Counted from the stretch's first letter, positions 1 to 53,955 are shown. The stretch is 64,000 nucleotides of DNA from Cyanophora paradoxa CCMP329 (GCA_004431415.1 QPMI01000396.1:1-64000); one strand, 5' to 3'. Notes: generated from the sequence alone by a model not told the origin. Numbers and translations: made by a program.

Positions 1-1210
1 GCGGGCGTCGAGAGTGGGTCCGACCCGGTGAGTCTGGTGCCCGATGTTGCAGCAGGCGCCGCGCTGTCCTGCGGCGCCTGCCCTTACGCCGATCACGGCG
101 CAGGTTGCCGCGTCGGCGTCTGCGCCTTCTCGTCTGCCTGGCGGTCTTGAGGGCGACGCCCTGGTGCAGGGGGCCGCGGGCGTCGAGACCGGGTCTCTGG
201 GATCGCGCCCTCCGCATGCCGGTTTGCAGACCGATCCATTCGTCCTACAGCTGGTTCCCGATGCGGCAGGCGACCGTGCCGCTGCTGCGGCGAATCTGCC
301 AACACTCGGCAGCGCCACCGACCCGGTGAGTCTGGTGCTCGATGTTGCAGCAGGCGCCGCGCTGTCCCGCGGCGCCTGCCCTTACGCCGATCACGGCGCA
401 GGTTGCCGTGTCGGCGTCTGCGCCTTCTCGGCTGCCTGGCGGTTTTGAGGGCGACGCCTTGGGGCAGGCGGCCGTGGGCGTCGAGAGTGGGTCCGACCCG
501 GTGAGTCTGGTGCTCGATGTTGCAGCAGGCGCCGCGCTGTCCTGCGGCGCCTGCTCTTACGCCGATCACGGCGCAGGTTGCCGCGTCGGCGTCTGCGCCT
601 TCTCGTCTGCCTGGCGGTCTTGAGGGCGACGCCCTGGTGCAGGGGGCCGCGGGCGTCGAGACTGGGTCTCTGGGATCGCGCCCTCCGCATGCCGGTTTGC
701 AGACCGATCCATTCGTCCTACAGCTGGCTCCCGATGCGGCAGACGACCGTGCCGCTGCTGCGGCAAATCTGCCAACACTCGGCAGCGCCACCGACCCGGT
801 GAGTCTGTTGCTCGATGTTGTAGCAGGCGCCGCGCTGTCCCGCGGCGCCTGCCCTTACGCCGATCACGGCGCAGGTTGCCGTGTCGGCGTCTGCGCCTTC
901 TCGGCTGCCTGGCGGTTTTGAGGGCGACGCCGTGGGCAGGCGGCCGTGGGCGTCGAGAGTGGGTCCGACCCGGTGAGTCTGGTGCTCGATGTTGCAGCAG
1001 GCGCCGCGCTGTTCTGCGGCGCCTGCCCTTACGCCGATCACGGCGCAGGTTGCCGCGTCGGCGTCTGCGCCTTCTCGTCTGCCTGGCGGTCTTGAGGGCG
1101 ACGCCCTGGTGCAGGGGGCCGCGGGCGTCGAGACCGGGTCTCTGGGATTGCGCCCTCCGCATGCCGGTTTGCAGACCGATCCATTCGTCCTACAGCTGGC
1201 TCCCGATGCG
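1..1210 (+). repeat. Higher-order tandem array (298+175 bp units) of duplicated exon+intron modules
   Basis: GTGAGT donors at 28, 326, 501, 799 and 973 (spacings 298, 175, 298, 174). Removing a 76-nt intron (gtgagt...cttac...ggcgcag) leaves in-frame exons of 222 and 99 nt. Confidence 0.9.
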
Positions 1211-4200
1211 GCTCCAGCGGGAGAGAGGGACGCTCCCACTACAGGAGGGGGTGTGCATGATTCACTTCGCTCAAACTCCTTCTAATTCTCTGGCTTTTTT
1301 CAGCAGGGTCCTTGCCTGCGGGAGATTTTGAGCTGCCGTCACTCGTCATGGAACGCGCGGTGGGTGCTGCGAAAGATCTTAAGAGGGCGTTCGATGCGGT
1401 TGTGAATGCGACGAATCTGTTGCCGTGGGAAGGCGACGATTGGCTACCCCTCAGTATGTTCTTGTATCTTGATTTTTTGTACTCTCATCTATTTTTGAAT
1501 GTGTCTTTCCTTCCAGCCAAACCGGTGTTTCCGCCTGAGATCTTCTGGAACGTCCCTGGGAATATCCGAGGGCATTGTGGTCTTTACTTGTTGCTGAACA
1601 ATATTATGACGGCAGTCTTCAAATTGAAGTACAACTTGCGGGAAGCAGCGGAGGCCTTCAACAAGTTTGTCGTCCTAACCCAACGGCGTTCGTACAGCAT
1701 TCATCTACACAGTACCATGGAGCGTGCCTTCAACTGGCTGCTTAACTCTAAATCAGTCACTTTGGAGGACGCGGCTGAAATATCTGCGTACGGGTCATCT
1801 AATGCCTTCGACACGTCATTCCTGGATGACGAGGCCACGTCGAACATGCGCCAGATGACAGAGACGACCTTCAAGTCGTGGGTTGCACAGGGACTGACGC
1901 CCCGTGAAATTGTGGTGGAACTAGCGAAGATGCGCGATGACGGAGTGAAACACTATCTGCACGTCGAGATGATGGCTGCGTCGTTCATCAATTTCATTGA
2001 ATTATCGCGGATCGAAGAGGTCTCGAAGGCTACTTACGGATCGATGTGGGATGATTACTGTCGTCTACAGCATTTATTGTCGTCGCCGAATCCAGATATC
2101 GGTTCTGGGTTCAAGCATCTGACCCATCTTCTGGACTGCATCAGCGAATTGAAGAATTTGCGTCTTGAATTCGAGCGAAAGTTGTCGTCGTCGCACCCGT
2201 GCGCAGATGAAGCCGAGCTACTTTCTTTGCAATGTCCAGTGATATCCGGAATTCTAACCGAGAGAAACCGAATCGTCTTGTCTTGGAGGGACTCTGTGAT
2301 AACGTATGATTCAAACGGTAGTGATGGCAAAATGTCGCGCGTCGCCAAAGATGCATTCATCCGAATTGTTAAATCTACAATCACGCGATTGGGCACGTCA
2401 GTTGCGGGTGCCTCGAATTTGGTGATGCCACTGTTCTGTATCGCCTGAGTTAATACTGGAATGCGCAGATTGGAACGCGAAGGACGGAGACACAGTACTT
2501 TATAGTTTCGACGATGGGGTTCTTAGTGGATCTCTCAAACGTCGGGACATTGCTACCCTGAGACCGAACGAAGAATTTACTGATGAGGTCGTGAATTTTT
2601 TCCACCAGTGAGTTAACGCAGTTTCTTGCAGCGTCATGCGCTTTTGATTGTTGCCGTGACCACGAACGGTATAGTTGCTTGATGGAAAAGTTGCGTGATC
2701 CGACGTTCAGGGCTTCTGTACCTGCGACGAGTGTCTGTTTTTTCAACACGTATTTTACCGTGCTTCTGAAGGTGTGTATCATGTATCGCCTTATTCCGTC
2801 TTGCCGATATTGACTATGCACAGGCGGGGTACGGGGAATCGGATCGGGCTAGGAAATGGTTCGTTAAGGCTGGCGTGAATATTTTCAAAACCCAGTTTCT
2901 TGGGTTTCCTGTGCACCTGCCCAAGTAAGCGTCTCGCCTTCTTTTAGTGCAGCGGCATGCATACTGATCAATGTGCAGTCATTGGATTCTCGTAATTGTC
3001 TGCAATTTGGGTAGCCTCGGCCAACGAATATCGGACCCTCGACTGCGACCGGCTATTGTGCAAGTGTGTTCAATGGGTACGGACGAGAACGCATTCTTGG
3101 ACCGGAAATGTACACGTCTCCTTAAGGGCTCGCTTATAAGGTCGGCTTTGTGTATATGACTACGGGGGCTCTGTAACGTGAATCCGATTCAGGTTCTTCC
3201 AATCGGCGTACCGGGACAAGGCTCTGTTTCCCGGGTCACCTCGCGATATATTATCCGGTGACCTTGTTTTCAACTATGTTGTAGCCGAAGTACGTACATT
3301 CTGGCTGGATTATAATATTTAAGGCATTCGATTGATGGGGGCTGTTTGCAGGCAACGCGTCAAGGAGGCGTTGATTGCGGTGTTCATGTTTGTGTGAACT
3401 CAGAGCTACTCGTTACAGGTTGCCTAACCGAATTTATGCAAACTGAGGGTGGTAGCGTATCTACTCCACAGGTTACTGTTGTGTGTCGTCTCACTCCATA
3501 TCTCCTGATTTTGCTAATAGTTCATTTGCACCCCTGACGACATCGTGAATATGAGGACGCTCATATATTCCCTGGCTTGTGAGAAGGTGGGTTCTCATGT
3601 TTTTTGACCTGCATCATTTGAAATGTATGATTAATATATTTTGCGCGTTTATGGACTTCTCAGATTTCAGATCTACATCAGATTGCACGCAATGAGGACG
3701 CGATTCAGAGGTACTCGGACATGCTGTTATCGTTGGTGACTGCATGCGTTTTGCTTGGCTTATTGTTATTTATTTTATTTTCTCACCAACTGTTACCTAG
3801 CAATCCTCGGAACCTCCTGCCGACGAGCCTCGTGTTGGCCTACATGATTCATCCGGTCAGCGTGGGCTTCAACAATCCGATGCCATTAAATCGGTATGTC
3901 GTGCGCTCTTTCAACTGGCCCGTCTATTAATTCCAATGACAAGTTCGCAGGTTCTGAGCCGCGTTGCAGCCCGCGACGGGTCACCCAAGCTTGGCAGTAA
4001 ACTTTTGGAGGCCCGTCTCTCTGCGCGGAGTGCTCGCATGTCCCATTGTGCGGACCGTGGAGTTGACCCGCAACCGTCACGTCTACCCAATCGGCGTTCC
4101 AGCCTGCGAGTCGGCGATGATGTAGTCGCCGTTGCGGTTCCCCATGCGTTTGCCTTCACGCTGATCCCTGTGCAGGATTCCGGTTCGGCATTCGCACCTC

Positions 4201-6379
4201 CCGAACAGCCGGGTTTCATGGGGGGCGATGCATTGGGGCCGGCGAGTGACATGGAAGCCCGTTCTCTGGCCGTCTTGCCGGTGCCATCACCTGCCTCTCC
4301 GTCGGTCCCCGACCAAGGTTTGGTAGAAAAACACGCGATAATTATCTGTCGTTGATCGTTGCTGGCCTATTTGCAGCTGCTATTCAACAAGGTGTCGCAG
4401 GAGCGAGTGTACCTGGTTCACGTCGCAGTGGTAAGATACGAGAAGAGCCAGATGGTGAGGTTGATTTTTGGGCCTATCCTGATGGAATCCTTAATTAAAT
4501 CTGTTCGAGTGTCTGCTTATTTAACATGAGCAGGTGACCGCCAACGATCGAATCCTGCAGTTGTCCAGTTTCAAGTCGACGGAAAAAAGTATAAAATCTG
4601 TAGTTCATCTTCTGATGCACCGGTGCGGGTTCAATTAATATTTATCACACCATTTGAACATCCTCAATTATTCACTACGATCCTACCAGGATCAGTCCAA
4701 GGAAGATGCTGCTGACAGACGGCGCACGCGTGTATCGACTGGTGCAAGTAGCAAAAAGTCTCCGGGTTCGACACAAGGAATGGTTGCACACCAAGGCCGT
4801 TCTGCGTCCAAAAAGCGGAAAGCAAGCAAAGTAACTGTTCCCCGACGCGATGCCAGCGGCGTGAGTGATTAATAGTTGTACTCAATCGCACTATTTATGA
4901 TTCCCCTTTGAATATGCGGTGTTTTGTATATTAGGCTGGGAAAAGGGCGAGAACGGGTGATTCCGATGATGACGACAACGGTGCTGATCGTGTGAGTAGT
5001 TTACTCTATATATATGTGTCGATGATTCCCGTTTGATTCTTTGTGTTGTATCGAAGGATGCTGATGCTAGCGACATTGACAGTGTTTCTTTGTCGGTGAA
5101 TGCATATCTGTGCGATTCTCTTACTTGGTTTTTTTTGATGACCTTCGTTGGATCCCAGTCGGATACACCTCCTGGCCATTCCGGTGGCAGAAGCGGAAAC
5201 GTGGGTGAGGCACTATCGGTGAGTGGTCTCCCGATATCCAGCTCGACATTTGTATTTTCTGATCCCTGTTCAGCTTATACCAGCGACGTCGACCATAGTG
5301 GAAAATGAGCGGAAGTCCTTGAAATTTCTGTCGCGTAAGGCTCGGGTGGCGTGGATGGTCAAATCTTTATCTGCATCTGCGGATACCCTACAGAGTTCAG
5401 TTGGGCCGATGATTACATCAACGGGCAGTTCATCTGGACCAGTTGTGCCTTGTGCTAGTGGCTCCAATTTCAGCACTCCGCAGCTTCCGCTATCAATCGA
5501 TGACATTTTCACGTGTTTGGTCTCCGATGACTGCTCAGCAGTTCCGCAATTTGTTGCAGCATCCACTCCCGGAATCGGACCTGTCGCCTCCCGAAACTCG
5601 AAGATGTTCGACTTCGGCGAGAGACTGTATACGGCCATCGCATGCAATGGCTTGTCGCTTTCGGAATCTATAGCCAGAATTGAGCAGGGAAGATTGTGTC
5701 TGCTCTTTTGCTCGAGTAGTGCACTCTATTTCAAGCGAGTCCAATTCCTTTTGTGGATTATCCAGAAGGAAGGTACACCTGACGCTGTGTAATCCCTAGT
5801 ACTGCTCATGCTCATACGGTCTATGTCGATCGCAGGCGCACGTCAGATGATGCAGATGACTGATTCTCAGATCGACAGTCTTTGGGGGACGTTTCGCAAG
5901 AAGCAGATCAGCATTCGCTTCTGGCCGGAAGTGAAGGCCGCCTTGGCGTGCCTGTACCCGTCTTGTGAAGAAGAATCTGCCCCTCCGGATCAGAAACTTC
6001 CATTCGACCTCACGAAGAGTGATTGTGTTTTGGTGTTGTACCGGGTACGTTTCGGGCGATTTAATTTTTTGTTCCACGTGTTCTTCTTAACGCTGTTTGA
6101 CTCCAGATTGGGTGTCTCCTTGCACTACACCCCAATTTATTGAAGTACTTGCTGGCTGCTCCCCGGGTTGCGGGAGTTAATGCCTACGAGGTGTACTCGT
6201 ATCTCAGGCATGTAGTCCAGCATAAAAACGGCGGCCTCCTCGATCATGTTCGGGACACGATTGTTGCGGCGGCATCTCCAACTTGTGCTCCTGCCGTCAG
6301 CGCAGCATTTGCGTTTCGCCCTCCCGAAGAACTGAAAGGCTTGTTATCAGACGGGGCCAGATGGCCTGCATGGTTTTAG
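1..6379 (+). CDS. Large multi-exon protein with Ulp1/SENP (peptidase C48) SUMO-protease domain (~2470-3590); 5' end outside window
   Basis: Spliced exons read LKRRDIATLRPNEEFTDEVVNFF / VCFFNTYFTVLLK / RKWFVKAGVNIFKTQFLGFPVHLP / HWILVIVCN / QGGVDCGVHVC, which is the C48 motif order with catalytic His and Cys. Joining to the exons up to the stop at 6379 is inferred. Confidence 0.8.
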
Positions 6380-7114: not shown

Positions 7115-7458
7115 AAGTCAGATTCGCAGCAGTGATTTCACTTATGCTTAGCTGCATATCAAGCGCTAGCGCTCTACCGACTTTGAGGTCGACGTCCCTG
7201 CTATTGAACCGACTTCCGAGTGCACGTCCTCTCCAGCTGCAGCTCCATGGATTTGCAATTGCTCTGTAGCTAGGCCTAACGCCGAGCTCGTGGCTTGCTT
7301 ATGGCGAGTACATCTGGCCGATCCTTGAATTTCATATGCCTCTTCAACCGGGCTTCCACACAATCTGAGCTGCGCCCACAACGGTTAATAAAATATATAA
7401 TTCCCTGCGGCATTCGGGGATTTCTATATACAGAACTTTTGGATAATCCTGCGTATGC

Positions 7459-7998
7459 TTACCATCCAAACCTGGATAGCATGGTTTTGGCAGTTCTCCT
7501 GCCTCCGAATTCCATCCTCGCGATTTGTTCATCAGCCGCTGCGATCGCATCCGCCTCGTTGGCAAATGTTTCAAGCTCTTCGCGACCGCCGTCCAGCGAG
7601 TCATTCGCTCTCCACGTCCACTGCCGGCGCAGGGACAGTACGCGCCACTCAATGCCGGTCACGCTCGTAGCGTGGACTACGCCGCAGAACAGCGGGCGGT
7701 CACTGTTTGAGCTGAGGTTGACAGCTTCGGCTACCAGAAACCGGTCATCCGGGCCCATGTACATCGCTGCTGTCCATACTAGGCGGTTGAATTGCCTATC
7801 TGTTATCAATCTCAGGCCTGTTCGCTGTATGGTTGCATATTCGAGCTCTACCAGCTCCAAGCGCGTGCTTGCCTCGAACGCCCGGTGAACTTCGCTTGCG
7901 CAGCATGTTACTTCCGAATTCCCTCTGGCGAATTGCACGACCTTCAAGTACACCGGCATTGCGTACCGCATTGCGCTAAACTCGGCAGAGTTGCTCAT
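7459..7998 (-). CDS. Hypothetical protein, divergently transcribed from the SUMO-like-domain gene
   Basis: 179-aa ATG-initiated ORF with globular composition and no recognised motif; the 3' end may be spliced. Confidence 0.45.
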   Translation of the reverse strand: MSNSAEFSAMRYAMPVYLKVVQFARGNSEVTCCASEVHRAFEASTRLELVELEYATIQRTGLRLITDRQFNRLVWTAAMYMGPDDRFLVAEAVNLSSNSDRPLFCGVVHATSVTGIEWRVLSLRRQWTWRANDSLDGGREELETFANEADAIAAADEQIARMEFGGRRTAKTMLSRFGW

Positions 7999-8199
7999 AT
8001 CTACCGTCTTGATTATGCCACGACTTTTACTGTTCTCGTTGCGCTCGTCTCACGCTGCAATTGCAGTCGACGCGTCGCTCGGAATAGAGGTCTGATGAGC
8101 GACGTAGGGGTACACAATACATCGAGTTTCATATCATCGTTACCGACGGCTTAAATGACATCGACTATGCTGCCGCTTGCCGACCGAGAATATATATCC

Positions 8200-10075
8200 A
8201 TGGGTGATGCTGCAGCAGATACATTGCCGCCTTCGAAACGTAGGCTTGTCGCGCACCGCACTCGAGACGCAAGCTGATTGAACTTGCAGGCCAGCGTTCG
8301 ATCACTAAGGTGAGACAACCGCAACTGTGTTTCTACGGATCATGCGCGGACGACGGCAGACAAGTCGACATCTGATATGCCGCAGATTGCCGCTCGTCAA
8401 GAAGCATCAACGATGAACGCAGCAGCAGAGAGAGCGATGCCTTCGCAACGTAGGCTGCTTGCGCACCTCATTCGAAACGTAGGCTGATTGAATTCGCAGG
8501 CCAGCGTTTGATCAGCAAGGTGCGACGCCACCGAAAGTGGTGCTGCTCGATTGCGATGTTCGAGGCGCAGGGCGACCAGATCCTGGAAGTCCTGGCCATG
8601 GTCACAATCGGCGACGAGTGTGCGGGGCGTAGGGACGTAGGCACATTGACGGAGCTGCCGATTCCTGCCGGGTATGACCTATTGTATCCGGAAAACGAGT
8701 TCGTTCAATTCTCGATCCCATCAATTGTGACTTTCCCAGTAACTGATCGAAAGAAGGCCTGCTGAGTGCAATATTGAAGTGAAATTCTTTGTGCCCCACG
8801 CAGAAAAGAAGGTAACATTAAGTTTCTCTGTCGAATATGTGAACCGAAACTAATTACATTTCGTCCCCATCGCAGACATCGTTACACACATGGCCGCGTG
8901 GATCCTTCAACGACGCGTTTAATTACTGGTGTATGAAGTACAACTTGCGCAAAGGGGCGTTCGTATTTGGAGGGAAACAAATACGGCCTGTGGACAGTCC
9001 GGGATGCGTTGGGGTATGCAATGGCGACACCGTTATATACGTAGAGGAGAGCAAGCTGACAGCTGAAAGTCTGAAACGGTGCGCGCTGAACGTGTACATA
9101 CCGGATGGTGATCTAACGTGGGTGCCGGTCCTCGAGCACGGCCGCAGGGAGGAAGAGTTTGATTCGTACGTCGAGTGTCACGATATAATGAACTCGCAAT
9201 TCCGATTATTTACGCTTGTTCAGAGTCGACGTTGAGAGTGCGATGGAGGTGGTGATCGTGGGCGACAGCGGGCACCAAGACATGAGGATGGTGGAAATTC
9301 TCTGATCTATATACTCGTTATTCGAGTGGATCTGTATCTTGTTATTCAAACGTTAGCGTGTGCATCGCAGGGGCTGAAAGTGAGTCGGGCGACCGGAATG
9401 TACTGGATGCCAGCGAGGCAAAGGTTCGTGTATGTACTTGATCGGGCCGCCGAGCACGAATAACGGACGCACCTGCTTCGCAGCGTGAACCTGCGGATGA
9501 CCGTGATGGGAACGCACGATTCTACACTACCTGCAGCATTTGCGTTGCACATGGTGCCAGGCCAATCGCGGGCCACGATACGTGACGTATATCTACGACG
9601 AACTGATTATACGCCGGTTCACAGAGTGACATAGCCGTGCTGATTGATCGACCTCTATCCGAGTCCATGCGGGTGTACGTTGATAAAATTATCGTGCCCC
9701 ATAGGCACGTTTTCTCCTGCCATATGGACGTCGCATGGATATACCACGTTACATGTCCCAATCATGCCCCTCAGGCACGTGTTTACAGGATATGACGCGG
9801 TTGAATTCGTGTACAAAGGGTGCTTGCTAAAGATAGGACCGACTCCGGCTGAAATGGATATGAAGCACGGTGATGAAATTAAGTACGTGCTTCTTGTATT
9901 TATTGCGTGCGAATGACGATGACACCTTTCCAGGGTAATACCATACAATAGAGTTGTCGGCTCGACGCTCGGCTGTGGTCTTCACGATTTTTGCTATTGC
10001 CTTCGACTACAACTGATGCAAGATGACGCCCTCCAGTACCCTGCCTCTGCTATCACCGACCTTGGTTCCCGCTAG
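8200..10075 (+). CDS. Multi-exon protein with two SUMO-like domains (Rad60/Esc2/NIP45-like SLDs)
   Basis: SLD1: FNDAFNYWCMKYNLRKGAFVFGGKQIRPVDSPGCVGVCNGDTVIYV. SLD2: PLRHVFTGYDAVEFVYKGCLLKIGPTPAEMDMKHGDEIKV. Both resemble the SUMO F.F.G..I....TP..L.M..GD.I signature. No C-terminal di-Gly. Confidence 0.65.
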
Positions 10076-11347: not shown

Positions 11348-13223
11348 ATGGATTCCCTGCCTGACTGCGTACTGGTGGAGTTTTTTCGAAGCCTGTCTTC
11401 CGATCGCAAGTCGGCCGTGGCGTTCTCCCAGTCGTATCAACGCGCGCGTTGCATTTTCCTGTCTTCCTCAGACTCAGTCCCTGTGTACGGGGACCGTGGT
11501 GTTGTGTTCGACCTGGACGCTGCACTGCACGAGCTTGGCTACGTTGATCCGCGCGAGATGGTCGACGATTTGCAAATGTCTGATATTAATGATGTCCTTT
11601 GCCGCTGGGTGTACCACCTCCTCACCCAGGAGAGCAACTTCTTGCGCATCGTGTCCACCGCATTTGCAGATCCTGTGTGGCGGCGCCCGTACATCGCTGA
11701 CTTTCTTCACCGCGTCATCCTCTGGGCTTTCGTGCCGGAACCTTCATCATCTCCCATCCCCGATGATCGGCGTGCTCTTGCATTGTCTACTAGCTCACTC
11801 GACGTGGAGCATGCTCGCCCAGTACATGTAGGATGGCTACGTTTGGCAATGACAACCAGTGCCAAGACGCTGATTGTGGACGACCTTGCGGCCGAAGATC
11901 TCGGCGTAATAGACGCTGCTCACGCGGATATGCCAACAGCGCCAGGCATCTGCATCCCTATCTACCGCAGCCTCCCGTGCGCAGCCACAGCGCTGCTTCT
12001 TTGCTCGGCCAAATTACTTACCAAATCCTCGCACTACGCGCAGGCTTGTCAAACCGTCTGCCGGGCCTTTTCGCATCAATAAACTTGTCATTTCCGGTAC
12101 TGCCATCGCGTACCACTACGCTACCAACTATAGCCAACTCGTCGACGCCCGGCTTGAAGCCAGGGAGGTTATCGTTCGCGGATCCCACAACACCTTACAG
12201 GACTTGCCGCCGCTGGCCCGGCCCCCTGTCATTCTGCGGCTTGAGTGCACTGAACAACCGTACCATGTGGAACGACTCTTCACATTGCGTGTCCCACACA
12301 TTCATATCATTCCCTCCGCACGTGTGTCACCTGCATGGGCCTCGCACATGCACATCAACCTCGAGCCCCGCTGGGTAGGTGACGGCAGCAAGCTCCAAGG
12401 CCCGTACCAGACAACGCATCTTGAAATTGAGATCCCAACTTCGCCTGTTGGTTGCATGCGGATGCAGTCCCTGCCTCGGTCCCTCGTTGTACTACGTTGT
12501 CCCGTTTCGGACTGTTGCCTGCAACCTGTAGCCTCTGGTATAGCCTTGCTTCCGCATCTCATATCGCTCGATCTCTCTGCTGCAGCCCTGTTCGACCATA
12601 GATATAGGGCCTCAGACATCGCTCGCTTTGCATCAGCCATCTCTTCTTCTACCCTTCGTCGCATTGTGATCCCCGTTGTATGCCCCCAGGGGGTCGAGTG
12701 CCTTGTTATCGTCAATGCCGTCGCGAATCTTGCGCGCAACTGCCGTGTCCTGGAGTCTCTCGGTCTCGTCGGCGGCATTCTGACGTTGCCAAGGCAGGTC
12801 CCGCGCTATGCGGCCGCTGCGGTGGCCGCAGCGTTTGAGACGTCCACCAGCATTAACGAGGTCTTTCTCGATGTCCCATCACAAGAGAACACCGTGTCCC
12901 GCGAGGTTGCAGCCTTCTTCCGAGCCTACATTACAGCTTTGCACGAACGCAGCACGATCGCCGATCGGCTACTCAAGGAGAAGCGTGATATCGCCGCGGC
13001 CGGAGCTCGCGTCTCCAAGGCATGCTCGCAGCCTGGCGAGGATGGCTTTCGTGGTCCGCTCGTTGAGGCTAAAGCAACCTATGAGGCTGTTCAGGCGGCA
13101 GAGACGCGGACCACCTTGCTCAGGCTTCGCGATTCCGAGCTAGCCGATGAGATTGCCCGTATACAGCAGGCCTTCTGTCCCTTCGAAATCGTCGATAATG
13201 ATGTGATTGTTATTGATGACTGA
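11348..13223 (+). CDS. F-box / LRR-like protein with C-terminal SIM-like motif (one intron ~11977-12043)
   Basis: N-terminal MDSLPDCVLVEFFRSL is F-box-like. A gtgcgc...cgcgcag intron joins ORFs 11348 and 12204 in frame. LRR-like segments LPHLISLDLS and LARNCRVLESLGLVG; ends VIVIDD*. Confidence 0.6.
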
Positions 13224-26695: not shown

Positions 26696-26899
26696 ATATC
26701 GTAGGCCAGGCCTAGGTTCGTCCGGTTGCAAGCATCCGGTCATTTGCTACCGCTCACCCAGTTAGCTCTCATGTCGACAGCTAAGTTCGCGATACCTGGA
26801 TATGTTACAGTTCGCGTACGAGTGTGTGCATGTACTAGCTAAGGTATACATGCAGCCTACTCATGGTAACATGCCATTGGTTGACTGACGTGGATAGTA

Positions 26900-28117: not shown

Positions 28118-28606
28118 TCGATGATGCATATAATTTCTGATGCTGGGTTCAGGAGGTCATGGGCGTGGCAATGGGGGCGGCAGTGGGTATGTCGTTTCTA
28201 TCATTTAGGCACCAGTTCTTGCTGCGTCTGTAATCGCACTTTTTTGTTTTTGAGCGGGGTGTGCGTTGTTTTTGAGCGGGGTGAACCCTGTGAGCAACCC
28301 ACCTGAGCAGCTGGTCCTCCCTAATCCTCTTTCCCCCTCCCGCACTTATTGGTCTGCCCCTATAAATGAGGTTCTGCTGTGTGTTATTTGTGCAGATTCT
28401 GAGTGACTCACTTGCCCGTTACCCTCGCAAATGAAAACCAGTTTGCTTTATCCACGCTCACGGACCATGAATACAATTGCTACCCCAACCATGTCCGTCT
28501 ACCCCCAATACATCTCTGTATATCCACCGGTTCCCCGTCTATTTACTCGCTAAGAATTGTTCATGCCCTCGACTTGCCACCTGTTCATGTCCTCGACTTG
28601 CCAACG

Positions 28607-33439: not shown

Positions 33440-33615
33440 GGCTTACTATATTCTAGTCCATGTCCTAGCTAAAGATCTTCGCATCGCGGACTGAAAGCAA
33501 GATGTCGAATAAGACTCACTCCCAGGATTCGAACCTGGGTCTAAGCGATGTGAGCAGCCGTCCGGGACGGCTGGTCTAGATCTACGGGTACCGAATAGCA
33601 AAGCTTCAGCCCGAC
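33440..33615 (-). ncRNA. Third copy of the tRNA-like / Pol III repeat
   Basis: Nearly identical to 26272-26445, including ccaggattcgaacctgg and the cagccgtccgggacggctg hairpin. Confidence 0.5.
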
Positions 33616-33708
33616 CCTTCAACTAATAGCCAAGCTTCAGCCCTTTTTTGGAGCTTCGAATAGTGAGGAGGCGGCTGGTCACTTCCCCTTATCGAGCGCG
33701 CCATCCCG

Positions 33709-41256: not shown

Positions 41257-41845
41257 TCTCTAAACCCTCCTTGCGGTGGTGATCGTACCCGTATTCTTCA
41301 TGTGCACATCTTCACGGGTGCAGTGTGGTGAACTCTGCATTCGACGCATCTGTTGCAGCAAGGGGATCGGACCCCGGCATAGTTAAGCTTACTATACTGT
41401 AGTCCAGGCCTAGTCAGCTAGCATAGTACGGAGCATGTGAGGAGGGATCGAGGCAGTGTGAGTGGATGATATTGGAATGGAAGTCAAGTGCAGCAAGCTG
41501 AGGGTAGCCAGTGCCAATGTGCGCATTCAATAAAGGCAGGCAAAACTAAGTAGTCGAGCGCAAGATAGAAGGTGTCAGAGATAGGAAACAGAAATCGATG
41601 CGAAACGAACCCCGACAACTGACTGCCATACAACGTATATGGAGTACGGCGCGCGTCCTTGCCCTAATTCTGACCGACATCGTCGTACATTCCGTGGTAC
41701 ATATCATCATGCAGCGGCCATCCATCTGGGTCCACATCGGGTCGATGTACGACGTGCTTGGCGACCGTCCCATTCCACTTCATATAGATTTCGGCCCACC
41801 GGCGATCGGGGTCCCAACTGCCAGCACAATCGAAGGCATTTACTA

Positions 41846-42355
41846 TCAAGTCGTACTCTGCGGTGGGGATGGGTTTAATAGTTGATCATCATCCAAGATT
41901 ACATGTGTACAGGCACCTCCATTACAGTCCGTAAGCTGAACGGACGCAATCACATCGTACGCAGAAGTAAACTCGTTGTTACTCACGCGCACCGCTGCAG
42001 GCCCAGGTGGTACTGCTATGATGGCGCCTGTGCCGGGATTCTTGATTATAAAAACGTCGGGGGTCATTTGGCTCATGGCCTCCAGTACGATGATGGAACC
42101 GGGGCCGCTGACTCGCACTGATTGAGATATATCGCGGTAAGAAGCTAAATCGAGATTCGGTCTCGCGTAAGAAGCAGCTAGCACTATATCGGATGTGGGC
42201 GACGTATCTGCGATGGCGCAAATCGCAGCATGCACTTGCGTCAGCAGCGAACGGAGCAAGCGCACGGAGAACATACCTCTCGATCGCTTCTTGGAACCGG
42301 AATCGAGGATGGGACGCAAAGTATTCGTCAACGACATGTCTAGCCGTCTCTGCAA
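41846..42355 (-). CDS. Hypothetical protein (probably spliced)
   Basis: 169-aa ORF with no recognised motif. Confidence 0.3.
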   Translation of the reverse strand: MQRRLDMSLTNTLRPILDSGSKKRSRGMFSVRLLRSLLTQVHAAICAIADTSPTSDIVLAASYARPNLDLASYRDISQSVRVSGPGSIIVLEAMSQMTPDVFIIKNPGTGAIIAVPPGPAAVRVSNNEFTSAYDVIASVQLTDCNGGACTHVILDDDQLLNPSPPQSTT

Positions 42356-43725
42356 GAATCAAGTCCGGCAATTAGGGGTACAGCCTGCATTCCCGGCGCC
42401 GTGAACGACAGCCCGTGCGCTACACGCGCAACTCGTCGCATCGTTCTTAGCGCGCTCATTCGCCTGCGCAATCTCCAGCTAGGCCAACCCACCGCTAAGC
42501 GCGAAGCAACGCGGCGCGCTCCTTCGCCAACGCCAGCGCCATCAAGGCGAACACAAGCGCTAGAAGCGCCGCTCGTCGTACCTTCGAAGCGCGCTCAGTC
42601 GCAGGGTGGCTGATACCCCGGCTCGAAGTAAGCATGCTCAGACCCGATCCGCGCCTGCCGTCTAAACACAGACGACTTTTAACTTATATGTTTCAACAGG
42701 TTCCGATTACTTGATCATGGCGAAAACAAAAGCGTGCCATGGGATCTCACCTGGGATGTTCAGAGGAACGATGCAGAGGATCGAGCAGCCACATGATTAT
42801 AGAGGACCGATCCGTAACTATAGTCACTTCTCCGACGTCACTACTCTTATGAGAAACACACCGCATGTTGATCGCATCCAAATCGTTGAAGATGGAACGG
42901 TTCTGCAACGATTTCTGCAGATCGAGCCTATCCACATCTTCAGGCCATGGCAAGCCGGGCGTGACTTCGGTATTACCCTTACGTAAACCTCTACTTCTTC
43001 ACGTCTCACCACCAGACGCCTGCCAGCTATCTCTCGGGCACTCGATACGAAACTCCGCCTGCATCTGTCCTGTCCCTACACATCAGAACGTATCAGAGTG
43101 CCAGTTCAGTCAGTGTACTGCGTTCACCCGCACGTACGTGGTCGCATTCCCTTCATAAATTCCACATTATTCTTATCCCTGCGCAGTGTTTCGATTTCAA
43201 CGAGCACTTGATATTCTCCCTTCATAATGAAGATTGGTCAGCTATTCGTCCTGCACTCATGGTCATGATCAAAGTTAAATCCTTTCCATAGGGAATGCCC
43301 ATTCCAATTCTGCCAAAGACAAGCAGGTCTCCACAATCTCATCATTGACGAGTTCTTCAAGTCCATCCTTGACGGGGTCTGTGCCCGATTTACCTTTACA
43401 TCTCATAATTACTGATACCCTCATTCCAGACAACGCCTGCAGATCTCGCTGTCGAAATAGACAACACAGGAAGATGGCTGCCATGCGCTTCCGACAATAT
43501 ACCCGACTAGATCAAAATCTCCAAGCAAGGCTAGGCCGCGCACCCCCCATCAGTGCATCACCCCGCCCCGCCCTTCTCTGCCACATCCAACCCCGCCCCC
43601 GCCAGGGCGTCGCGAGTCGACCGCTGCGCCCCGGGCGGCTTACTATATTCTAGTCCATGTCCTAGCTAAAGAGCATCGTACCACGGACTGAAAGCAACGT
43701 GGCCCCCTAATCGATAGACCTATAG

Positions 43726-44079
43726 CTAGTAGTCTTCAGTCGAATCATAGCCACAAACATGGTCATCGTAGCAGTCTGTTTCGGTGCAGCATAGACGATT
43801 GCAGATTTCGCCGCGGGCCTTGCCGTATGCAAGGTGCTCTCCTGGCGCTGCTGGTGGTGCATGTCTCTCATTCTTGGCGCGAGGATCGCCGTATTGACGA
43901 TCAAGAGGGTTTCGCTTCAGAATCCGCCGACAGCGTATAACTGTGTGATTGGGGCAGAGGGTTGTGACATAGAAGTAATCAAGCGCGCCCATGCGGACAT
44001 GAGCCCATGTGCGATCGGTACAGACATCGCATTTTATCATCTCGCTGCTATGTTCCTCACAGTAGATGCTGCATAACAA
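43726..44079 (-). CDS. Degenerate PHD-finger-like exon
   Basis: IYCEEHSSEMIKCDVCTDRTWAH matches the PHD C..MIxCDxC..WxH pattern, but the Cys after His is not in register. Confidence 0.35.
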   Translation of the reverse strand: MLCSIYCEEHSSEMIKCDVCTDRTWAHVRMGALDYFYVTTLCPNHTVIRCRRILKRNPLDRQYGDPRAKNERHAPPAAPGEHLAYGKARGEICNRLCCTETDCYDDHVCGYDSTEDY

Positions 44080-44624
44080 GGGCGTTGGCTCCAGTCAGAT
44101 ATGTTGGTTTTGTGCGTAGGGTTGACCACTTAAACATCATATATATCCCTCGCGAACCTGCTACAGTTATCCGATGAGCACCGGTATACCGTATGCTGAC
44201 GACCGCCAGTACTGGCCATGGAGGGAGCGTGAAAGTCGTCATTGCAGAAAAGAACAGGACAGCCAGTGACGGATGAACACCGAGCAAGCCGGCACGTTCG
44301 TGCTGGTTCGAGCGGGCATGGGCCGTGCATACCGTCGATGGCAGGGCACGCGTACGGTCCGTGCGCACGCGCGTCGGCAATCTCATCCCCGGAACACGCT
44401 GCAGTCGAAGTAGGAGGTGGATCGGCTTCAGCTGCCGGCGCCATTACGCTGTCTGGGCCCAGGCCTCAGTCTGACGTAGAGTCTCTGGCATCAAACCCGA
44501 ACGGCGGCTTTTTTCCCAATATGCGTACGCGAACTCGGAGAGTTAGTCGACGATCGAGAACTAAAGTTAGTCCCAAATTTGAAATTTTGCGTTGAGTACG
44601 TACTCTAAACCATACCGAAGTGCA

Positions 44625-47059
44625 ATGGCACGTCAATCAAAGGCAGCTGCTGCTGCAGCCACGGCTGAGAAGAAGGACAACGTGCTCGAGCCGAAGAAGG
44701 CTGACGTGGCCGCGTCACTGGCGAAATCTGATGCCACTGCTGCTGCCGGGAAGGACCCGCTCCCTGTCGCCGTTGACGAGGCTTCGCCGGTGATCCCTAC
44801 GCCGGTGGATGCGACGTGGACGACGCGGCACGCGCTGCCTGGGTGCGCTTGGAGTTAATCAATGTTCGGTCCGGCATGGTGCGGATTTAAGCTGACGATC
44901 GGCGCGATAGCAGGCTGAACGACGGCATGCCACGGGAAGGGGCAGCTGCAACTATCACGGCGGCAGTGGCATCGTCTCGCCCGTTGCCTGGCGCGTCCGG
45001 ATCCATTTGCAATGCTGGGCAAGTGTACGTATTCTACGATCGCGTAATATTGGCTGTGACTAATACGACGTTATTCGTCCCTGCGTAGATCGGCTGCCGT
45101 GCCGGTCGCCACTAATTCGGCAAGTGCCACGGCTAATGGGATTGTGATGCTATCGTACGTGCTTTTATAATCAATAGCATTTGTGCACGACGAGCGTCAC
45201 AACCCTAATATATTTCCAGGCCCGCAAAGAAGGTTACTGTGGCGCGCACGTTCATGGATTTGAAGGATGGGAGGGATTTTAACGGTGTCGTGCGGATTGC
45301 GAACATGCACACCATAAGTGGAAGGAACGGAGGTGACACCATCCGCGGTACTCTGGAGGATGAGGTGCGCAACCCCGTTGTAGCTGGGTAACATCATGTG
45401 TAATGTCAATGTGGCGATTTTATATAAGCTTTCTGCTCATCGACGTACGCAATGCAGGTCGGCGATAAGGTGCCGCTCCGTATCTTCACAGGGGCGATGC
45501 TAACAAGTGCGGGAAAAAATGCCATCAAGGGAGACATGCTAATCGATCAAGTGAACAATATAACCGAACACTTGAACGCAAGCTGCAACTCAGAAAATAT
45601 GGTATACTCTCCCATTTACGTATACTTCCATTATCCGTATCAGTATGCTGACATGGAATATATCGATCAGTACTTAATCATGAAATCATCAAACAAAGCA
45701 CGCTACTTGGTGAAAGGGACTGCGACCGAGAAACTGGCTTGGCCATTGACGCGAGACCGCACACTGCTGAAGGAGATCCAGATTAATTCTGGTAATGTCG
45801 GTCTAATCAACTTCGAATCAGTGAATGAGGAGGTCTGTCACTCATGTTTTACCTATATTCATATCGCGCGTATTCATTACCTGCTCACTTTTGCTGCCGT
45901 ACGTTAGGATCCTCGTCTCATCGAGCTTCCTCACAAACTCGCGAATATGGATCGCGCATCATTTGTCATGATGCGCTACGACATCGTTTCCGACTTCAGG
46001 GGAGCAGCAGTTGACTATATGAATGTCAACAAACTGTGCGACTCGAACAGGTTCAGCGAATGTGCGTGCTACTATAGATAACTGGGATGATACCACGTTT
46101 TTCGTCGCGCTCGTACCGTGTTTTATCGCTTCATCAGATAACATTGGATGCATCATCAAGGAGGAAGAGGACGGATACGTGTGCATGGACAAGCTCGGGT
46201 GTAAGGTGCCAGCTCGGTTTGGACTTGGCGCAAAGTTCGAGTCCCTCGGGGAGCTGTTCGACACCTACAGCATCGACGGGGTCGCGGACATCGTCGTTTC
46301 ATTCGCGGAGGTTCGGACGTCTATACTGTAGTTAAACATGGTAAACGAATGCAAGGCGTAATTCACACGCATTCAAACGTAGTTCAAATTCGAGCGACCA
46401 TCAGGCACCCCGACGGAACTGTGGTTTGGCTTCTTTTCTGAAGTAATGGGACTTGCGGAATTCGAGGAGAAAAAGAAGACCCTGCCGGTAGGGTTCGTCT
46501 CGAAGGCAATTAAAATTCCGGATGCGAGTGCTCGCTTGCATGCATCTGTCCCGTTTGGTAATGGGTCGAACCGAGTTGGTGCGGAAGTTCAGCCTATCGG
46601 TTTTAACCTGTGTAACCCTTTCATGCAGCGCTCTTCGCCGGCGGTACCGGCCCGACAGGGAGCACCCCGAATTTGTCGGGTACGACCGGGATCCCTGTCA
46701 AGGTTGGAAATGGTGGATCAGCGATCGCTCTGAATGGAATCTCAAGCTCGCCGATGGCAATGGCAGCAATGAACATGCCGATGCAGCTGCGCCTGAGCCT
46801 GAAGGACAATCCGTTCGCGGTGTCTCGCGATCGCACTGGAAGTGAGGCTTCTTTTCCTAATGGGCTCGTTGAGCGCGAGGTATATGACTTTCCGTACATT
46901 GCATATGCCACGTTCCAGCTAATCTCGTAGCAGGCAACTATCGCAAAGCGGAAGAAGGGAGGCAAGGACGAAGCCAAAACTTCAAAGAAACAGAAGAACG
47001 TGAGCGTGGAGTCGGAGTCAGATGCGGAGGTGGACGACGAGGAGGAGGAAGAAAATTGA
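44625..47059 (+). CDS. Putative tandem OB-fold ssDNA-binding (RPA/SSB-like) protein, paralog B, multi-exon
   Basis: DLKDGRDFNGVVRIANMHTISGRNGGDTIRGTLEDEVGDKVPLRIF (OB-fold L.D..G motif); GCIIKEEEDGYVCMDKLGCKVPARFG; tail KRKKGG...EVDDEEEEEN*. Confidence 0.75.
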
Positions 47060-48100: not shown

Positions 48101-48876
48101 ATCGTACGATTTCCAGGACGTGAGGTGTGCTCCGACAACTCCGGTGTAATCCAATTCAGGATACAGTATGTTTAACGCTTCACGAGATTATGTTGCACGT
48201 ACACTCAATGCAACGGATTGAAAACCGTAATAAAGCCCGTTGAGTAACGCGACGGACCAACCATCGGACGTGCACTAATTCAGCGGCACGTTATCGAATA
48301 CAGATGCACATGCTACTTGCATACTGCAGTGACTCGCTCATGTTGCACAGTCTTCCACTACTCTGGGTAATGCCTGGAGACGGGGGGCTGGTCCAGTTGG
48401 AAGCCAGCGCCGGGTTGCTTGCGGGGGGGGCATGGCCGGGAGCGACGGAGTACGGGGCACTACGGGGCGGCAAGGACGATGCGCTGCGGCGGGCCGGTGC
48501 ATGGGGGCGGATCGCGCGGGGCGGAGGGCGATGGGCTGCCTCCACATCTCTCGGCTGACGTGCGCAAGATTGTGCTCACCCCGGTCGCCATCGCCCTTGC
48601 ATGACCGACTCATCATATCGCTGACGGATGACGTTTGCCACGTTCTCGTCCGCGCTCCTGTAACGACATCGGAATCAAGATTTTATAGTATGGCGAAGTG
48701 TAGAGACGTGTTGACAAATTAAAGGGAGAGGGGGGCGACGGTACATGAGGAGGGGGGGGAGGGCGGTAGGGGGGGAGGGGGGTATGGAGCTTACCGCCGA
48801 ATGGCCTCCTCCGCGAGTACGGCCACCTGCATTGCAAGAGTCAGCCGTCATACTGAAAACGTCATTATCGGTAGTC

Positions 48877-51793
48877 CTATGCTTCGGTATGATTGAGTGT
48901 AAAAATCGTGTGGACCCTACAGTCGATCAAGTACAGAATCAAATCGAGCCGACCGGGGACGCCGATGCCGGCGCCTTTGCAAATCTCCACCAGCCGACCC
49001 CGAAACATCTTCATTGGATACAGCAGCAGCTCCGGCCCTGTCAATGGCAGCTCCTGCATGCACTGTAACCTGCTGCAGCGTTGGCTGAGAGTTCACGTAA
49101 GGGAAAATGGACGGACTCTGGAGATCCATCAGGGAGCGTGACAAATTGGCGAATATACGCGAGGACGGTGGGAGGCGTCCAGGTCATCACCGTCGCGGAG
49201 TCCGGGCCCACGGTACCCGGAGGTTGGGCTCCCATGTTCCCCGTGTTATCGTCGTCAACGCTGTCGCTCGCGGCATGTACCGGTGCGTTGGCATCTGACG
49301 TTGGATTACTAGGTGGTCAGAGACGACGTTCCAATAGAATATAACTTCGCTAGATCTAAAGTTGCTAGCTCAGGCACTGATAGCGCCTGCACGACCGCAC
49401 GTCCGTAATAGCGCACCTGCCTCCGGTCGTACTCTCTCGGTTCTCGCCCCTGCTCTCCGAATTAATCGGGTAGCCCGAATATTTAAACTCGATAGGTAAT
49501 AATTCGCACACCCTCTGATGAGACTTTAGCCTTCTTCGAATTCCGCGTGTTCGCACTTGGGCCCCCGTCCTTCTTTGCAGCAGAAGAGCTCTCCTCGATC
49601 ACACTACCCGCCGATTCGTACGCCTCCTCGTCCTCGTACGCGTCCTCCCCATCCGTCTCGCCCTCTACTCAAGGCGCCATGCGTCAGCGATTACTCACAT
49701 CGCATCGCTCGACATACCACTACTGGTTTCAGCGTTGTACTTGGGGCAGGTCTTCATGTGATTGGACAGGGTCTTCTTGCTGGCATACGTGCGATTGCAA
49801 TTAGCAGCGGGGCAAGGGAGACGGTCGTCGTCGGCCTTCTTGCTCGTAGCTTCGGAAGCTGCTGGATAAATTCAATGAGTACCGTTCGCACACCAGCCGG
49901 CGCACATGAGAGGCATGTTTGGCACCTGACTTCCGTTTGCATGCATCAATGTGCGTCCCCTTTCCTTTGAACGTTATGCCACAGTTATCACAAATAAACG
50001 GCGCCTGCTTCTTTCGCGCTTTCCCAGACGATCCTGCATCTCAGTCAGATCGGCTGCAGTTATGCATGATGTATGGGGAATGCAGTCAGCGATCGTGACC
50101 GTACCCCGTGACGCCTCGGTGCCCTTTCCTGCATCAGTCGACTCCGCCCCCTTCGAACCCTCGCGCTGGTTGCCTGCAATTGAGTCTAAGGGGTCGCTCC
50201 CTCGAGGGTGTTCGGGGACCTCTTAAATTCAACGCATCCTGCCGCTCACCAGGCCCTCCAGGTTGACTGTCTATACCTCGAGACTTGCCTGCGAGCATGT
50301 GAACTGTGACCATCTCGAGTGGATATTACGGTGCACCGGTTGCGTACCTTTCGATGTGGCGACGGGTGGTACGCCCGCCACCTCGCCTGCTTCCTTGCCC
50401 TTGCCAGTACCGCGCGATGACGCCATGCCTGCGGGCTCGAAGGACAATTAACTGCCGTATCCTTGCGACAGACGCTGCTCCCTTCGTTCGTGCACCTGAT
50501 GAACGAACCGTAGTCTGGGGGGGGCTTGATGCCCGCTCTTGTTTCACTTCGTCCGGGCGCCGCCACAGATTGGGCGGCGCAGGGACATTCGATCTCGTGG
50601 TTCTCGCCTGGGGGGGGCTTGATGCCCGTTCTTGTTTCACTTCGTCCGGGCGCCGCCGCATATTGGGCGGCGCAGGGACATTAGATCTTGTGGTTCGCAT
50701 TGCATCGGCGGGCTCGACTTTCGGCTGTACAGCGCGACCATCTTTGTACGCATCAGAACTACATATATCGCGCCAATTTCAAAGTTCCAATGACCGCACC
50801 TGTGCTGTGACGCCGCGGGCTCTTCTCTGATAGGCGCATCCCATCTGCGGCTCCAGCATTGCTGCCGCCTATTACGCCTGGCACCCCGCCCGAGCCTGCC
50901 GCAGAGCCGAACCGAGGTTGTCAGTCGCATCGTTCTAGCGGGGCTGCGCGCATGCACCTGCTATGTCGCCTTGGTCGCTCGAACCTGGTCCTGGGCCAAT
51001 CGTGACGTCACACCGCGAGCCATCGGAGGTCAGTTCCTTCACTCCGGCTGATCCACTATCGCTGCCGCCGGGTGTACATGCGCCCCCGTCCAAGCCTGCC
51101 GCCAACCCGAAGTTGTCAGTCGCTTCGTTCGAGAGGGGGTCCGGGCAGGCACCTGCGATGTCGCCTTCAGCCGGCGCGCTCGCAGTCTGACTGTCGCCTT
51201 CCGCGGGGTTATTTGCCGTCGCCGCCGCGCGCGCCGTCCCGCCCGTGTCCTTTGCACCTTCTGCCGAGTCCAGATCGATCACTGCTCGATTACAGTCAGC
51301 GTCAGGGCGCGGCGCTCGCTTAGTCTACGGTATCACCTGGAGCTCCGTCGCCTTCGGCATCGCCTGAAAGCGCCGGCGCCTCGCTCGTCGTCTTTCTCGA
51401 CTCCATTGTCTCGTCGGCCGAGTCCAGATCAATCACTGCTCCAGTCCGGTCAACGCCAGCACGCTGCGCTTCCGTGGCACTCTCACCTGATTGAGCCGCT
51501 AGCGCTCCTGCCGTACTGTTCCCTTCCATGTCCCTTTCGGCCGCGCCACCGCCCTCGTCGTCTTGTGCGAGCCTCTCGGTACGATCGTCGCCGGCGTGCG
51601 GCGAACCACACTCTCGCTCCATGTGCACCTAGTGCTGCGGCTGTCAGCTGGTTCCCTGTGGTGATGCTGTGCACGTGCACCCGACGCTCTGGTCTTCAGC
51701 TTCCTTACCTGCTCGCACCTGGCGTCTTACGCGCTTATTCCAACGTGTACCCCTTCGACCAGCCGTCCTGGACGGCTGCTCCCTTAGCTTCAT
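48877..51793 (-). CDS. Low-complexity multi-exon protein with two VIDLDS SIM-like motifs, two VKQE SUMOylation consensus sites and a C-terminal SAM-like domain; possibly damaged
   Basis: VIDLDSA at ~51430 and ~51275; 93-bp tandem repeat 50515-50700 (PDEVKQE); VMTWTPPTVLAYI...ELPLTGPELLLYP...GIGVPGRLDLILYLI is SAM-like. In-frame TAG at 50935; start uncertain. Confidence 0.45.
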
Positions 51794-53955
51794 TATAAGC
51801 TCATACTCGGAAGCCCGACGTCGACGGGCGGCGGCTGGGCTCCTGGTGCGACACGGGGATTGATCAGGCGGCTGAGGTCCGGATCGCTGGGCGCAGTTAC
51901 CGTAGTACGTATACGGGCGGAGACCCGCCAGACGCGTACGTATACGTACACCGGATCCTGAGTACTAGTGGATCGCCGCGCCGGCGCTGCGGCCGGCGCC
52001 GGGCCGCACCTCCGACCCGGGCCGGGCCGGCGGCGGGCCGCGCCCGGCCTGCGGCAATAAGCAAGGCATGAGGAGGACCTGCAAACCCTCCGAATTACCT
52101 GCAGCTGATCGATGTAACATAGCTAGCTACCAATATTAATAGTGCTCTAGATCTCGCCGGGCCTATAGCTAGGCATCCGGATCCGGATCCGGGCCGCGGC
52201 CGGTACTTTTTTTTGCAAAAGTGGACGTCGCATTGATACACCACGGCACATGTATCAATGTTCTACGTGACGTGCCCTTCCGACCGGTCAACTATCTAGC
52301 CGAAGGTGCTAGCTAGGTGCCGGCCATGGGTCGCGGGCCGCGGCCGGTACGAGGTCCCCCGGCAGCGGGCGCGCGAGGGTAGGAGGTGGAGCTCGAGCGG
52401 GCGCTAAATCTAGTACTAGTACTGATACTTGTTGCGCGTTCATGCAAACAATCCGAATTACCTGCAGCTGATCGATGCAGCACAGCTATATAGCTAGCTA
52501 CCAATATTAATAGCGCTCTTCACGATATTAATTCTGATGATATATACGAAATATTTCAAAATTACGGGCGCCGGCTACTATAGGTATTAAATATTTGAAT
52601 TCTGCGTGAAAATTATATATGTTGTCCGGATATCGATCTATCCTTCTGGCATTTTAAACATTTCCGTGCCGGCGGAGACCTGATACAGACCAGAGGCTGC
52701 ACTGCCCCGGGGCAGGAATGTTTATTGAGCAAGAAAGTTCACCCCTGCTCGAGTCTCGATCGGCTGAAAAAACTCGCAGGAGCCTGTTTTCCCGGCGTCC
52801 GGTACAACAGGTACTTGAGGCGGCCTAGCGGACCACCCTGTGCCCCTCCGGTCTCGGCATGTTTGACATGAATTGTCGGGCGTATCGGGCGCATTTAGGC
52901 GCACTCGGTCCGGCAGATATACCGCCACTTGGTGAGGCGCTAGATTGCATTTTTCGAAAATGTGTTCTTGTCTATTCAATGATTCCTGGTCCACCGGATA
53001 GGACTCGGATCTTCCTGTACACGTTTCCGGACTCCTAGGGACATGCATATGCCTTGCTAGGATCCGGCGAGAAAACCCGGGTTTTGAGAGGTCGGGACAT
53101 TTCATTTTGGCCTAGGGTGGGCACCCGAACACCCCCAAGTGGGGGAAGGGGAAGGGGTCCTTCCCCAAATAAGTGCCGCCGGAGATTTGTGATTGCTTTA
53201 ATTTGTTGTCCTTAATATCACTACCTACGCCGTGCACGTGACGGGGGGTTCGCCACACCGTACTAGTAGTCTCTCAAAAAAGACAAAAAAAGAGATTTCA
53301 TGTTTTACAGTAGCCGAAGTACTAGTCTGACGGTACCAAATCCTTTTTTCTAACCAAGCTCATTGATATTCATTTGCATTAACTTATATAATTAGATGCA
53401 AATTTAATCATGAGAATCAATTATCGATCGAGCTAGTTAAATCGATCGGTTTAATCGATCGGTTTAATTGACGTACGATTAATTTAATTCGGTACGTGCG
53501 AATTCGAAGTTCTACGAACGTATATATATATATATATATATAAACGTGCGAAAAAGAGTTTATTTTATAATTATAATGGCCGCCGTATTAGGCTACTAGT
53601 AGCCGGCCCTGCAGCCGGCGCCTGCAAGCTGCGCTGCAGGCTGCAGCTGGTACCGCACGCCGCGGCCTGTATCACTTGCTCGAGGACCCGGGCGTTGAAT
53701 CGGGCGCCATGGTCCTTGCACGTTGCAACCCTCCCTGCAAGGAGCCGTTACGTTTTTGTCCCCCACCCCCTAGTACTGGGCTCAGTGGGCTACTAGCCTA
53801 GTAGGGCCGCTAGGGTGATTGAAAATTTTCAATCACCCTAGCTGCAGCTTTAAAGCTGCAGCGCTCACGCCAGCGCGCATCATTCCGAAGTTCGCACCAG
53901 CAGCGCCCTTGGCCTTCTCTCCGTCGTCACTCGTTCTCCTCAGTAACCAAGCAAC

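Follow-up and report, generated by a model that had tools for sequence, protein, structure and literature searches.

The closest described systems belong to the HLE2 clade (Helitron2, Helentron and proto-Helentron), with which the locus reported here shares a Y2 Rep and a PIF1 helicase in one ORF and a Helentron-type motif 2 (PMC4067079, PMC11417382, PMC5148889). Helitrons are described as nicking at one end, displacing a strand by means of PIF1, passing through a circular intermediate and inserting without target duplication (PMC10288648, PMC5148889). Within the sample of Thomas et al., F/Y-x-x-R and the Ser of RG(S)(P/L)HxH suffice to separate Helentrons from Helitrons (PMC4067079). Domains on record for HLEs, mostly in fragmentary form, are RPA, SSB-like OB, OTU, Ulp1, F-box-associated and 2OG (PMC11417382), and Culex Helentrons carry broken histone pieces. 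Reviews place Helitrons under about 40 kb and describe whole-gene carriage as rare (PMC6431247, PMC11162782). The part of the literature that we covered contained no Cyanophora Helitron study, no Helitron with a deoxynucleoside kinase (dNK) and none with H3 plus Ulp1/SUMO.

Here we describe a block of at least 52.5 kb from Cyanophora paradoxa in which an intact RepHel is accompanied by about 16 further genes, mostly spliced and some of them transcribed. The window, meaning the whole stretch of DNA analysed, is 64,000 nucleotides long, and its features are collected in Table 1. Every sequencing run in which the stretch occurs bears a single organism label, and two EukProt models of C. paradoxa match or are related to its proteins.

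Results

Extent and gene content of the block

Fourteen regions were modelled with a spliced-ORF finder and scored by a codon model trained solely on RepHel, dNK and H3, with dinucleotide shuffles as controls. The 14 gene models outscore all shuffles (z 3.6-16), and four additional models score weakly (z<3). Together with dNK and H3 the 14 models make 16 genes, so that the initial annotation's count of about 15 full-length genes alongside RepHel stands, as does its report of a single RepHel in the block (Helitron_like_N and PIF1 Pfam matches, 13 exons, no stop). The moderate-GC codon usage that it described as unlike the gene at 53956 is also borne out, with GC3 at 0.50-0.71 in block genes, RepHel alike, against 0.92 in that gene and 0.31 in the stretch after 57.5 kb. 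The internal repeats said to tie the block together were found as well, and are common to positions 6.6, 26, 33, 43, 48 and 51.8 kb. Gene composition alone does not tie the genes to one mobile unit. A scan within the window gave no compositional step and no terminal hairpin pair around RepHel.

Domain searches were run exon by exon, and spliced joins served only for local reading-frame checks. Most block genes are without relatives beyond Cyanophora, and searches with Rep, NTase, OB-like, dNK and repeat sequences returned no related loci among viral and metagenome contigs.

Table 1. Features of the block and its right edge, in window coordinates; z, codon model against dinucleotide shuffles.
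Feature	Position	Strand	Support or remark
473-bp tandem array, 2.6 copies	3..1212	.	at window start; element's left end beyond window
Ulp1/C48 SUMO-protease-like gene, multi-exon	1333..6379	+	z 10
Orphan gene model	7344..8132	-	z 3.6
Spliced gene, one or two SUMO-like domains	8155..9916	+	z 5.7
~600-aa gene, F-box-like start by eye only	11348..13223	+	z 13
RepHel	16092..23619	+	13 exons, 2,249 aa open, Pfam and motifs
Orphan gene model	23951..24607	-	z 6.2
Deoxynucleoside kinase (dNK), no intron	24630..25355	+	Pfam 1.6e-12
GC-rich 122-bp array and two 211-nt structured units	25860..26715	.	
Orphan gene model	26926..28233	+	z 4.7
OB-like paralogue A, beta-rich, acidic-tailed	28607..30981	-	codon model, comparison with B
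Second 122-bp array and structured unit	32336..33617	.	93% like 25875-26449
Orphan gene model	33709..35369	+	z 4.0
Orphan gene model	35719..38016	+	z 3.6
Spliced NTase candidate, like viral Gad2-family nucleotidyltransferases	39468..40766	+	z 4.4
Orphan gene model	41546..42635	-	z 5.9
Partial structured unit	43623..43703	.	
Cys/His-rich orphan gene model	43759..44491	-	z 4.2
OB-like paralogue B	44625..47059	+	EukProt tig00020781_g13701; RNA support for last two introns
Histone H3 variant, 140 aa	47541..48100	+	2.6e-27
C2H2 zinc-finger (ZnF) gene, multi-exon, transcribed	48656..51736	-	2.3e-6, z 16
Nested 127-nt retroposon-like insert, high-copy	52207..52333	-	poly-A end, 17-bp target duplication
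Departure from Illumina path	52525..52526	.	last block position that can be followed

The RepHel transposase

RepHel contains 12 GT-AG introns of 54-101 nt and, by local frame check, 2,249 codons without a stop. Pfam recognises Helitron_like_N (1e-17) and PIF1 (3e-17), and the motifs are complete, comprising TLSSDD as motif 1, FFVRYEVQSRGSLHAH as motif 2, YILGYMTK as the two-tyrosine motif 3, and the helicase motifs. Rep (HUH, two Tyr) and the PIF1/SF1B helicase share one ORF, which is the defining property of an HLE. Both diagnostic Helentron sites are matched, F/Y-x-x-R before motif 2 and the Ser within it, where HLE1 (canonical Helitron) has Leu. Domain scans of the last two exons found no endonuclease family, and since no AP endonuclease follows the helicase the protein is of HLE2/Helitron2 type and not a Helentron in the strict sense. 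The label Helentron-like given in the initial annotation is thereby kept for the Helentron/HLE2 motif signature and dropped for the strict class. As the element's ends were not found, HLE2 membership is assigned from the protein.

An OTU domain in the last RepHel exon was considered and is unsupported by domain searches. For DUF6570 before Rep, Pfam is blank, and a colinear alignment to a DUF6570 protein falls at the expected place at E 0.9 only. The nearest relatives, about 35% identical, are cellular Pif1 together with HLE2-type loci that have DUF6570 or OTU, the latter loci being the nearest non-cellular matches. Further 5' exons, with a C2H2 finger at 15527-15727, are likely on a weak model. 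No other RepHel was found among Cyanophora models within the query's length range, longer models falling outside that scope. In two RNA runs (X17 and X18) a fraction of 0.52-0.54 of the words from 17700-25400 is present, and the part of that stretch outside RepHel accounts for only 0.23 of the words, so that RepHel must be transcribed in that study; run X17 is RNA-like, with spliced joints and no coverage between genes.

Cargo genes

The Ulp1-like gene matches Pfam C48 on one exon at E 0.014, below cut-off, with His, Asp and Gln-Cys motifs in order, and the SUMO-like gene matches Rad60-SLD (E 0.028) and SUMO2 (E 1.3), again below cut-off. Weak as these two identities are, they are coherent. 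Pfam is blank for the F-box at 11348..13223. The NTase candidate has Gad2 look-alikes in the ESM Atlas (0.94-0.95), the nearest clusters being viral, and is blank in Pfam, PHROG and NCBIfam; the Gad2 family is itself predicted to comprise nucleotidyltransferases (bioRxiv 2023.05.01.538930). A partial dNK paralogue, 67% identical, lies on tig00000492, where the EukProt model tig00000492_g1432 fuses an N-terminal piece of dNK with Peptidase_S74 and may be mis-joined across another element. The H3 variant conserves the fold in a PDB search, with loop 1 longer by one residue and a tail unlike canonical H3. Thus the identities of dNK, H3 and the C2H2 finger gene are firm and Ulp1, SUMO-like and NTase are weak, while the SSB and ubiquitin labels of the initial annotation, like an OB fold, an F-box and OTU, were not confirmed; no ubiquitin was found by Pfam among the scanned ORFs and exons.

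Splicing could be followed in RNA for three cargo genes. RNA contigs skip both GT-AG introns of H3 (47679-47751, 47971-48038) and two GT-AG introns of OB-like paralogue B, or OB-B (46577-46628, 46877-46932), and give a minus-strand multi-exon transcript of the ZnF gene from 51736 to 48656. The 5' part of the ZnF gene has an 85-90% paralogue elsewhere in the genome. At 48751 (one extra G) and 48952 (A to G) every DNA run disagrees with the window, probably owing to assembly errors. A GC-rich 136-nt repeat (89%) follows the Ulp1 gene at 6597-6732 and the H3 gene at 48403-48538, where it lies in transcribed 3' sequence. A small paralogous ORF pair, at 35388-35663 (minus) and 40939-41256 (plus), has 88% DNA identity over 162 nt and dN/dS 0.57, its coding status being weak.

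The OB-like paralogue pair

Paralogues A and B are 68% identical, with dS 2.07 and dN/dS 0.10 over 326 codons; by sequence comparison, the pair reads as an old duplication kept by purifying selection, and a dS of about 2 agrees with the initial annotation's view of a long-resident gene set. A profile of the family finds just two proteins among 1.8 billion, both from Cyanophora and one on another contig. The family is present in at least four places: two in the window, one on tig00020629 and one on an 84% contig that matches neither window copy. Genes that were single-copy with host orthologues would have spoken against a mobile unit, and this family is Cyanophora-only and dispersed. The 84% contig also matches 29 nt of non-coding sequence between OB-B and H3 (47199-47228).

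The designation of this protein as an SSB found no support in any sequence or structure test. Pfam, PDB sequence and ESM Atlas searches for an OB fold or SSB were blank, and two AlphaFold runs (pLDDT 32 and 37) followed by two fold searches gave a best Z of 4.4 and nothing at E<1. In the second OB-like model the strand order fits an OB fold, which at pLDDT 32-37 is too weak to count.

Internal repeats and structured units

Copies of the 211-nt unit are found on the minus strand at 26300-26470, 26511-26680 and 33468-33620, directly upstream of gene models. Each unit combines a tRNA T-arm/B-box on a short acceptor-like stem, a 19-nt hairpin and an 11-bp closing stem (fold z -3.0), and the 19-nt hairpin recurs at 51760-51778. 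Possible interpretations of this unit are a shared promoter, a SINE and a Pol III RNA. As a source of tRNA genes it was rejected, ARAGORN and Rfam being blank.

Right edge and flanks

Reads were examined over 46500-52450 using Illumina DNA runs of 2012, 2019 and 2024 together with RNA contigs. DNA contigs of the three runs confirm the window sequence, one of them covering OB-B, H3 and the ZnF gene in a single uninterrupted 5.4-kb stretch. The sequence 51007-51641 has an 85-90% paralogue that keeps matching through 51816-51880 and 52017-52039 and again from 52366, and because this homology crosses 51970 the right end that the initial annotation had placed there fails. An HLE1-type end with hairpin and CTAG at 51970 was likewise discarded, as the homology extends beyond 51965-51968, where the CTAG lies, and this tetranucleotide occurs often in that sequence. 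The 127-nt insert has poly-T at its edge, is flanked by a perfect target duplication of 17 bp, and has many other genomic flanks among the contigs; it is present at full depth in the window's version of the locus and absent from the 85-90% paralogue.

In all three DNA runs, the contig over 52307-52525 goes on into non-window sequence. Since contigs leave the window at 52525, the sequence from 52526 onward, including the gene at 53956, is probably not the block's usual neighbour, and that gene loses the role of native-flank contrast previously given to it. Either the junction 52525/52526 belongs to just one copy or it arose in assembly. HLE2 elements are bounded by asymmetric inverted repeats with terminal hairpins and insert at T|T(C); no terminus was found in the window up to 52525, and the left end lies beyond the window. 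The read-covered stretch of about 6 kb, outside which RepHel lies, showed no empty site and no second full copy.

Beyond the junction, 52526-53610 is a candidate non-autonomous Helitron2-type element of about 1.1 kb on the minus strand, starting exactly where the Illumina path departs. It has an 11-bp inverted repeat (52570-52580/53597-53607), 44 nt from the junction and with its partner in a palindrome at 53591-53604, which 6 of 1,000 shuffles match in a test chosen post hoc. If real, this element could, as a speculation, have begun a read-through transfer of the whole block. A perfect 34-bp palindrome, with one of 22 bp immediately after it, occupies 53809-53862, roughly 100 nt ahead of gene 53956. 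From 56800 to 64000 the sequence is AT-rich (GC3 0.31) and holds fibre-like genes that lack introns and encode C1q, phage-tail-repeat and H-lectin domains, with 57-bp repeats at its edge; this is a separate virus-like insert.

Copies and paralogues elsewhere

Contig depth is not copy number, and depth ratios serve as a hint only that window contigs, 2.1-3.0x deeper than the 85-90% paralogue contigs at the same positions in 12 of 13 comparisons over three runs (1.2 in the other pair), represent more than one locus. In one run (X2), window depth is flat across GC at 595-642, contigs from other loci of the 127-nt insert lie mostly at 90-120 (one at 554), and a contig exactly matching 6.3-7.0 kb, left of RepHel, reaches 859. 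As a suggestion only, these depths fit several near-identical copies that include sequence to either side of RepHel and arose once the 127-nt insert was in place. The search for other copies recovered diverged dNK, OB-like and ZnF paralogues elsewhere and no second locus with two cargo genes together; the dNK and OB-like paralogues are on different contigs.

Discussion

We propose a model in which the block is a giant autonomous HLE2 element with resident cargo, at least 52.5 kb long, its left part truncated by the start of the window and its right part by a private junction at 52525, and we regard this as the reading most in keeping with the evidence and somewhat probable overall; movement of the block as one piece is likely. 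In this model RepHel would nick one end and peel off a single strand tens of kb long. The displaced strand would be circularised, and a copy would be pasted elsewhere without target duplication. The cargo would then be a resident kit that enables so long a transfer, and not debris. The dNK may supply nucleotides for the transfer, and the abundant acidic-tailed beta (OB-like) protein might coat the displaced strand as RPA does in other Helitrons. The H3 variant, SUMO protease, SUMO mimic and zinc-finger protein could keep the chromatin of the element open, allowing it to escape SUMO- and histone-based silencing locally. Finally, the unit would have been copied recently, after the retroposon had landed in it.

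The main rival, which we hold to be unlikely, is an ordinary-sized HLE2 inside a larger low-GC island, either an old endogenised virus or an amplified segment, where the genes are real and may have been amplified but are not moved by RepHel. Large DNA viruses typically carry genes of the kinds seen here (dNK, Gad2-like NTase, histones), and a fibre-gene block lies at 57.5-64 kb, yet the roughly 50 ORFs and exons scanned over 1-52.5 kb include no capsid, packaging ATPase, polymerase, integrase or tyrosine recombinase, and several of the genes are orphans. Such an island would accommodate the failure to find element ends and a depth excess compatible with any amplification; it sits poorly with the lack of a compositional step or terminal hairpin pair around RepHel, and with RepHel as the sole mobility gene seen.

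An improbable alternative is a plasmid- or virus-like rolling-circle replicon, in which RepHel would maintain most of the extra copies as extrachromosomal circles, with one integrated copy in the window. Most molecules do exit the window path at 52525 into a single other sequence at full depth, depth varies along the block (859 vs 620), and replication-type genes with interspersed GC-rich arrays resemble an autonomous replicon. Against this, the depth ratio to the paralogue stays steady at 2-3 in the 2012, 2019 and 2024 runs, as chromosomal copies would give, the wealth of introns and the fixed retroposon insert indicate that the block has long resided in a chromosome, and no circle junction was seen in the contigs examined. 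Least probable of all is a mosaic in which host genes lie among unrelated small transposons and some of the joins are assembly errors, which would fit the nested small elements and the want of Illumina contigs backing the join 52525/52526 but not the single 5.4-kb Illumina contig spanning OB-B, H3 and the ZnF gene, GC3 far under that of the host-type gene, the lack of relatives outside Cyanophora for most genes, or the repeats linking 6.6-51.8 kb.

The giant HLE2 element that we favour may, as a possibility we put forward tentatively, represent a Cyanophora family of HUH-helicase replicons, each above 50 kb and equipped with a conserved virus-like kit, still copying as a unit, possibly via a lasting circle. 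The kit might, just as tentatively, consist of RepHel, dNK, an ssDNA-binding protein, a nucleotidyltransferase, the H3 variant, and the SUMO protease with its mimic. Such replicons could conceivably be a rolling-circle counterpart of Starships, standing between a transposon and a capsid-less virus, a placement that we hold no more firmly than the family itself.

If the block moves as one, it would be larger and richer in intact genes than any rolling-circle transposon in the searchable literature. The limit of about 40 kb for Helitrons would be overturned, and single-strand rolling-circle transfer could carry a virus-sized genome. Furthermore, Cyanophora, which can be cultured and for which DNA and RNA runs already exist, would allow the study of how transposon-borne histone and SUMO enzymes defeat silencing, and many 'orphan genes' of the glaucophyte reference would belong to mobile elements.

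In size, the block of at least 52 kb compares with 5-14 kb for fungal and oomycete HLE2 and 20.4 kb for Chlamydomonas Helitron2-7 (PMC9977147), and it further differs from HLE2 in having about 16 whole genes and not fragments, no AP endonuclease and a transposase about 35% like its nearest relatives. The gene-capturing Helitrons of maize are likewise large, up to 39 kb, through uptake of coding DNA (PMC6431247). Their cargo consists of recent gene fragments in HLE1, whereas the genes of the block are intact, spliced and diverged from any host gene and, unlike the maize cargo, show purifying selection (in one pair, the OB-like). The giant algal KDZ/Zisupton, EnSpm-Plavaka and Sola elements (PMC12477816; bioRxiv 10.1101/2025.02.11.637652) resemble the block in their transcribed accessory chromatin genes and fixed nested insertions at 15-32 kb, but have DDE transposases and one to few accessory genes, while the block is rolling-circle, larger and holds many more genes. 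Starships (PMC11162782) share its size range (medians 27-97 kb) and full-length accessory genes, and differ in their tyrosine-recombinase captain, the only mobility gene of the block being the HUH-helicase; no DUF3435 captain was present among the scanned ORFs, the block's left end lying outside the window. Starship cargo comprises host-adaptive pathways, whereas that of the block seems to serve the element itself, in replication and at its chromatin. Classed as HLE2 from its protein alone, the candidate would therefore appear to work like an HLE2 and to load like a Starship.
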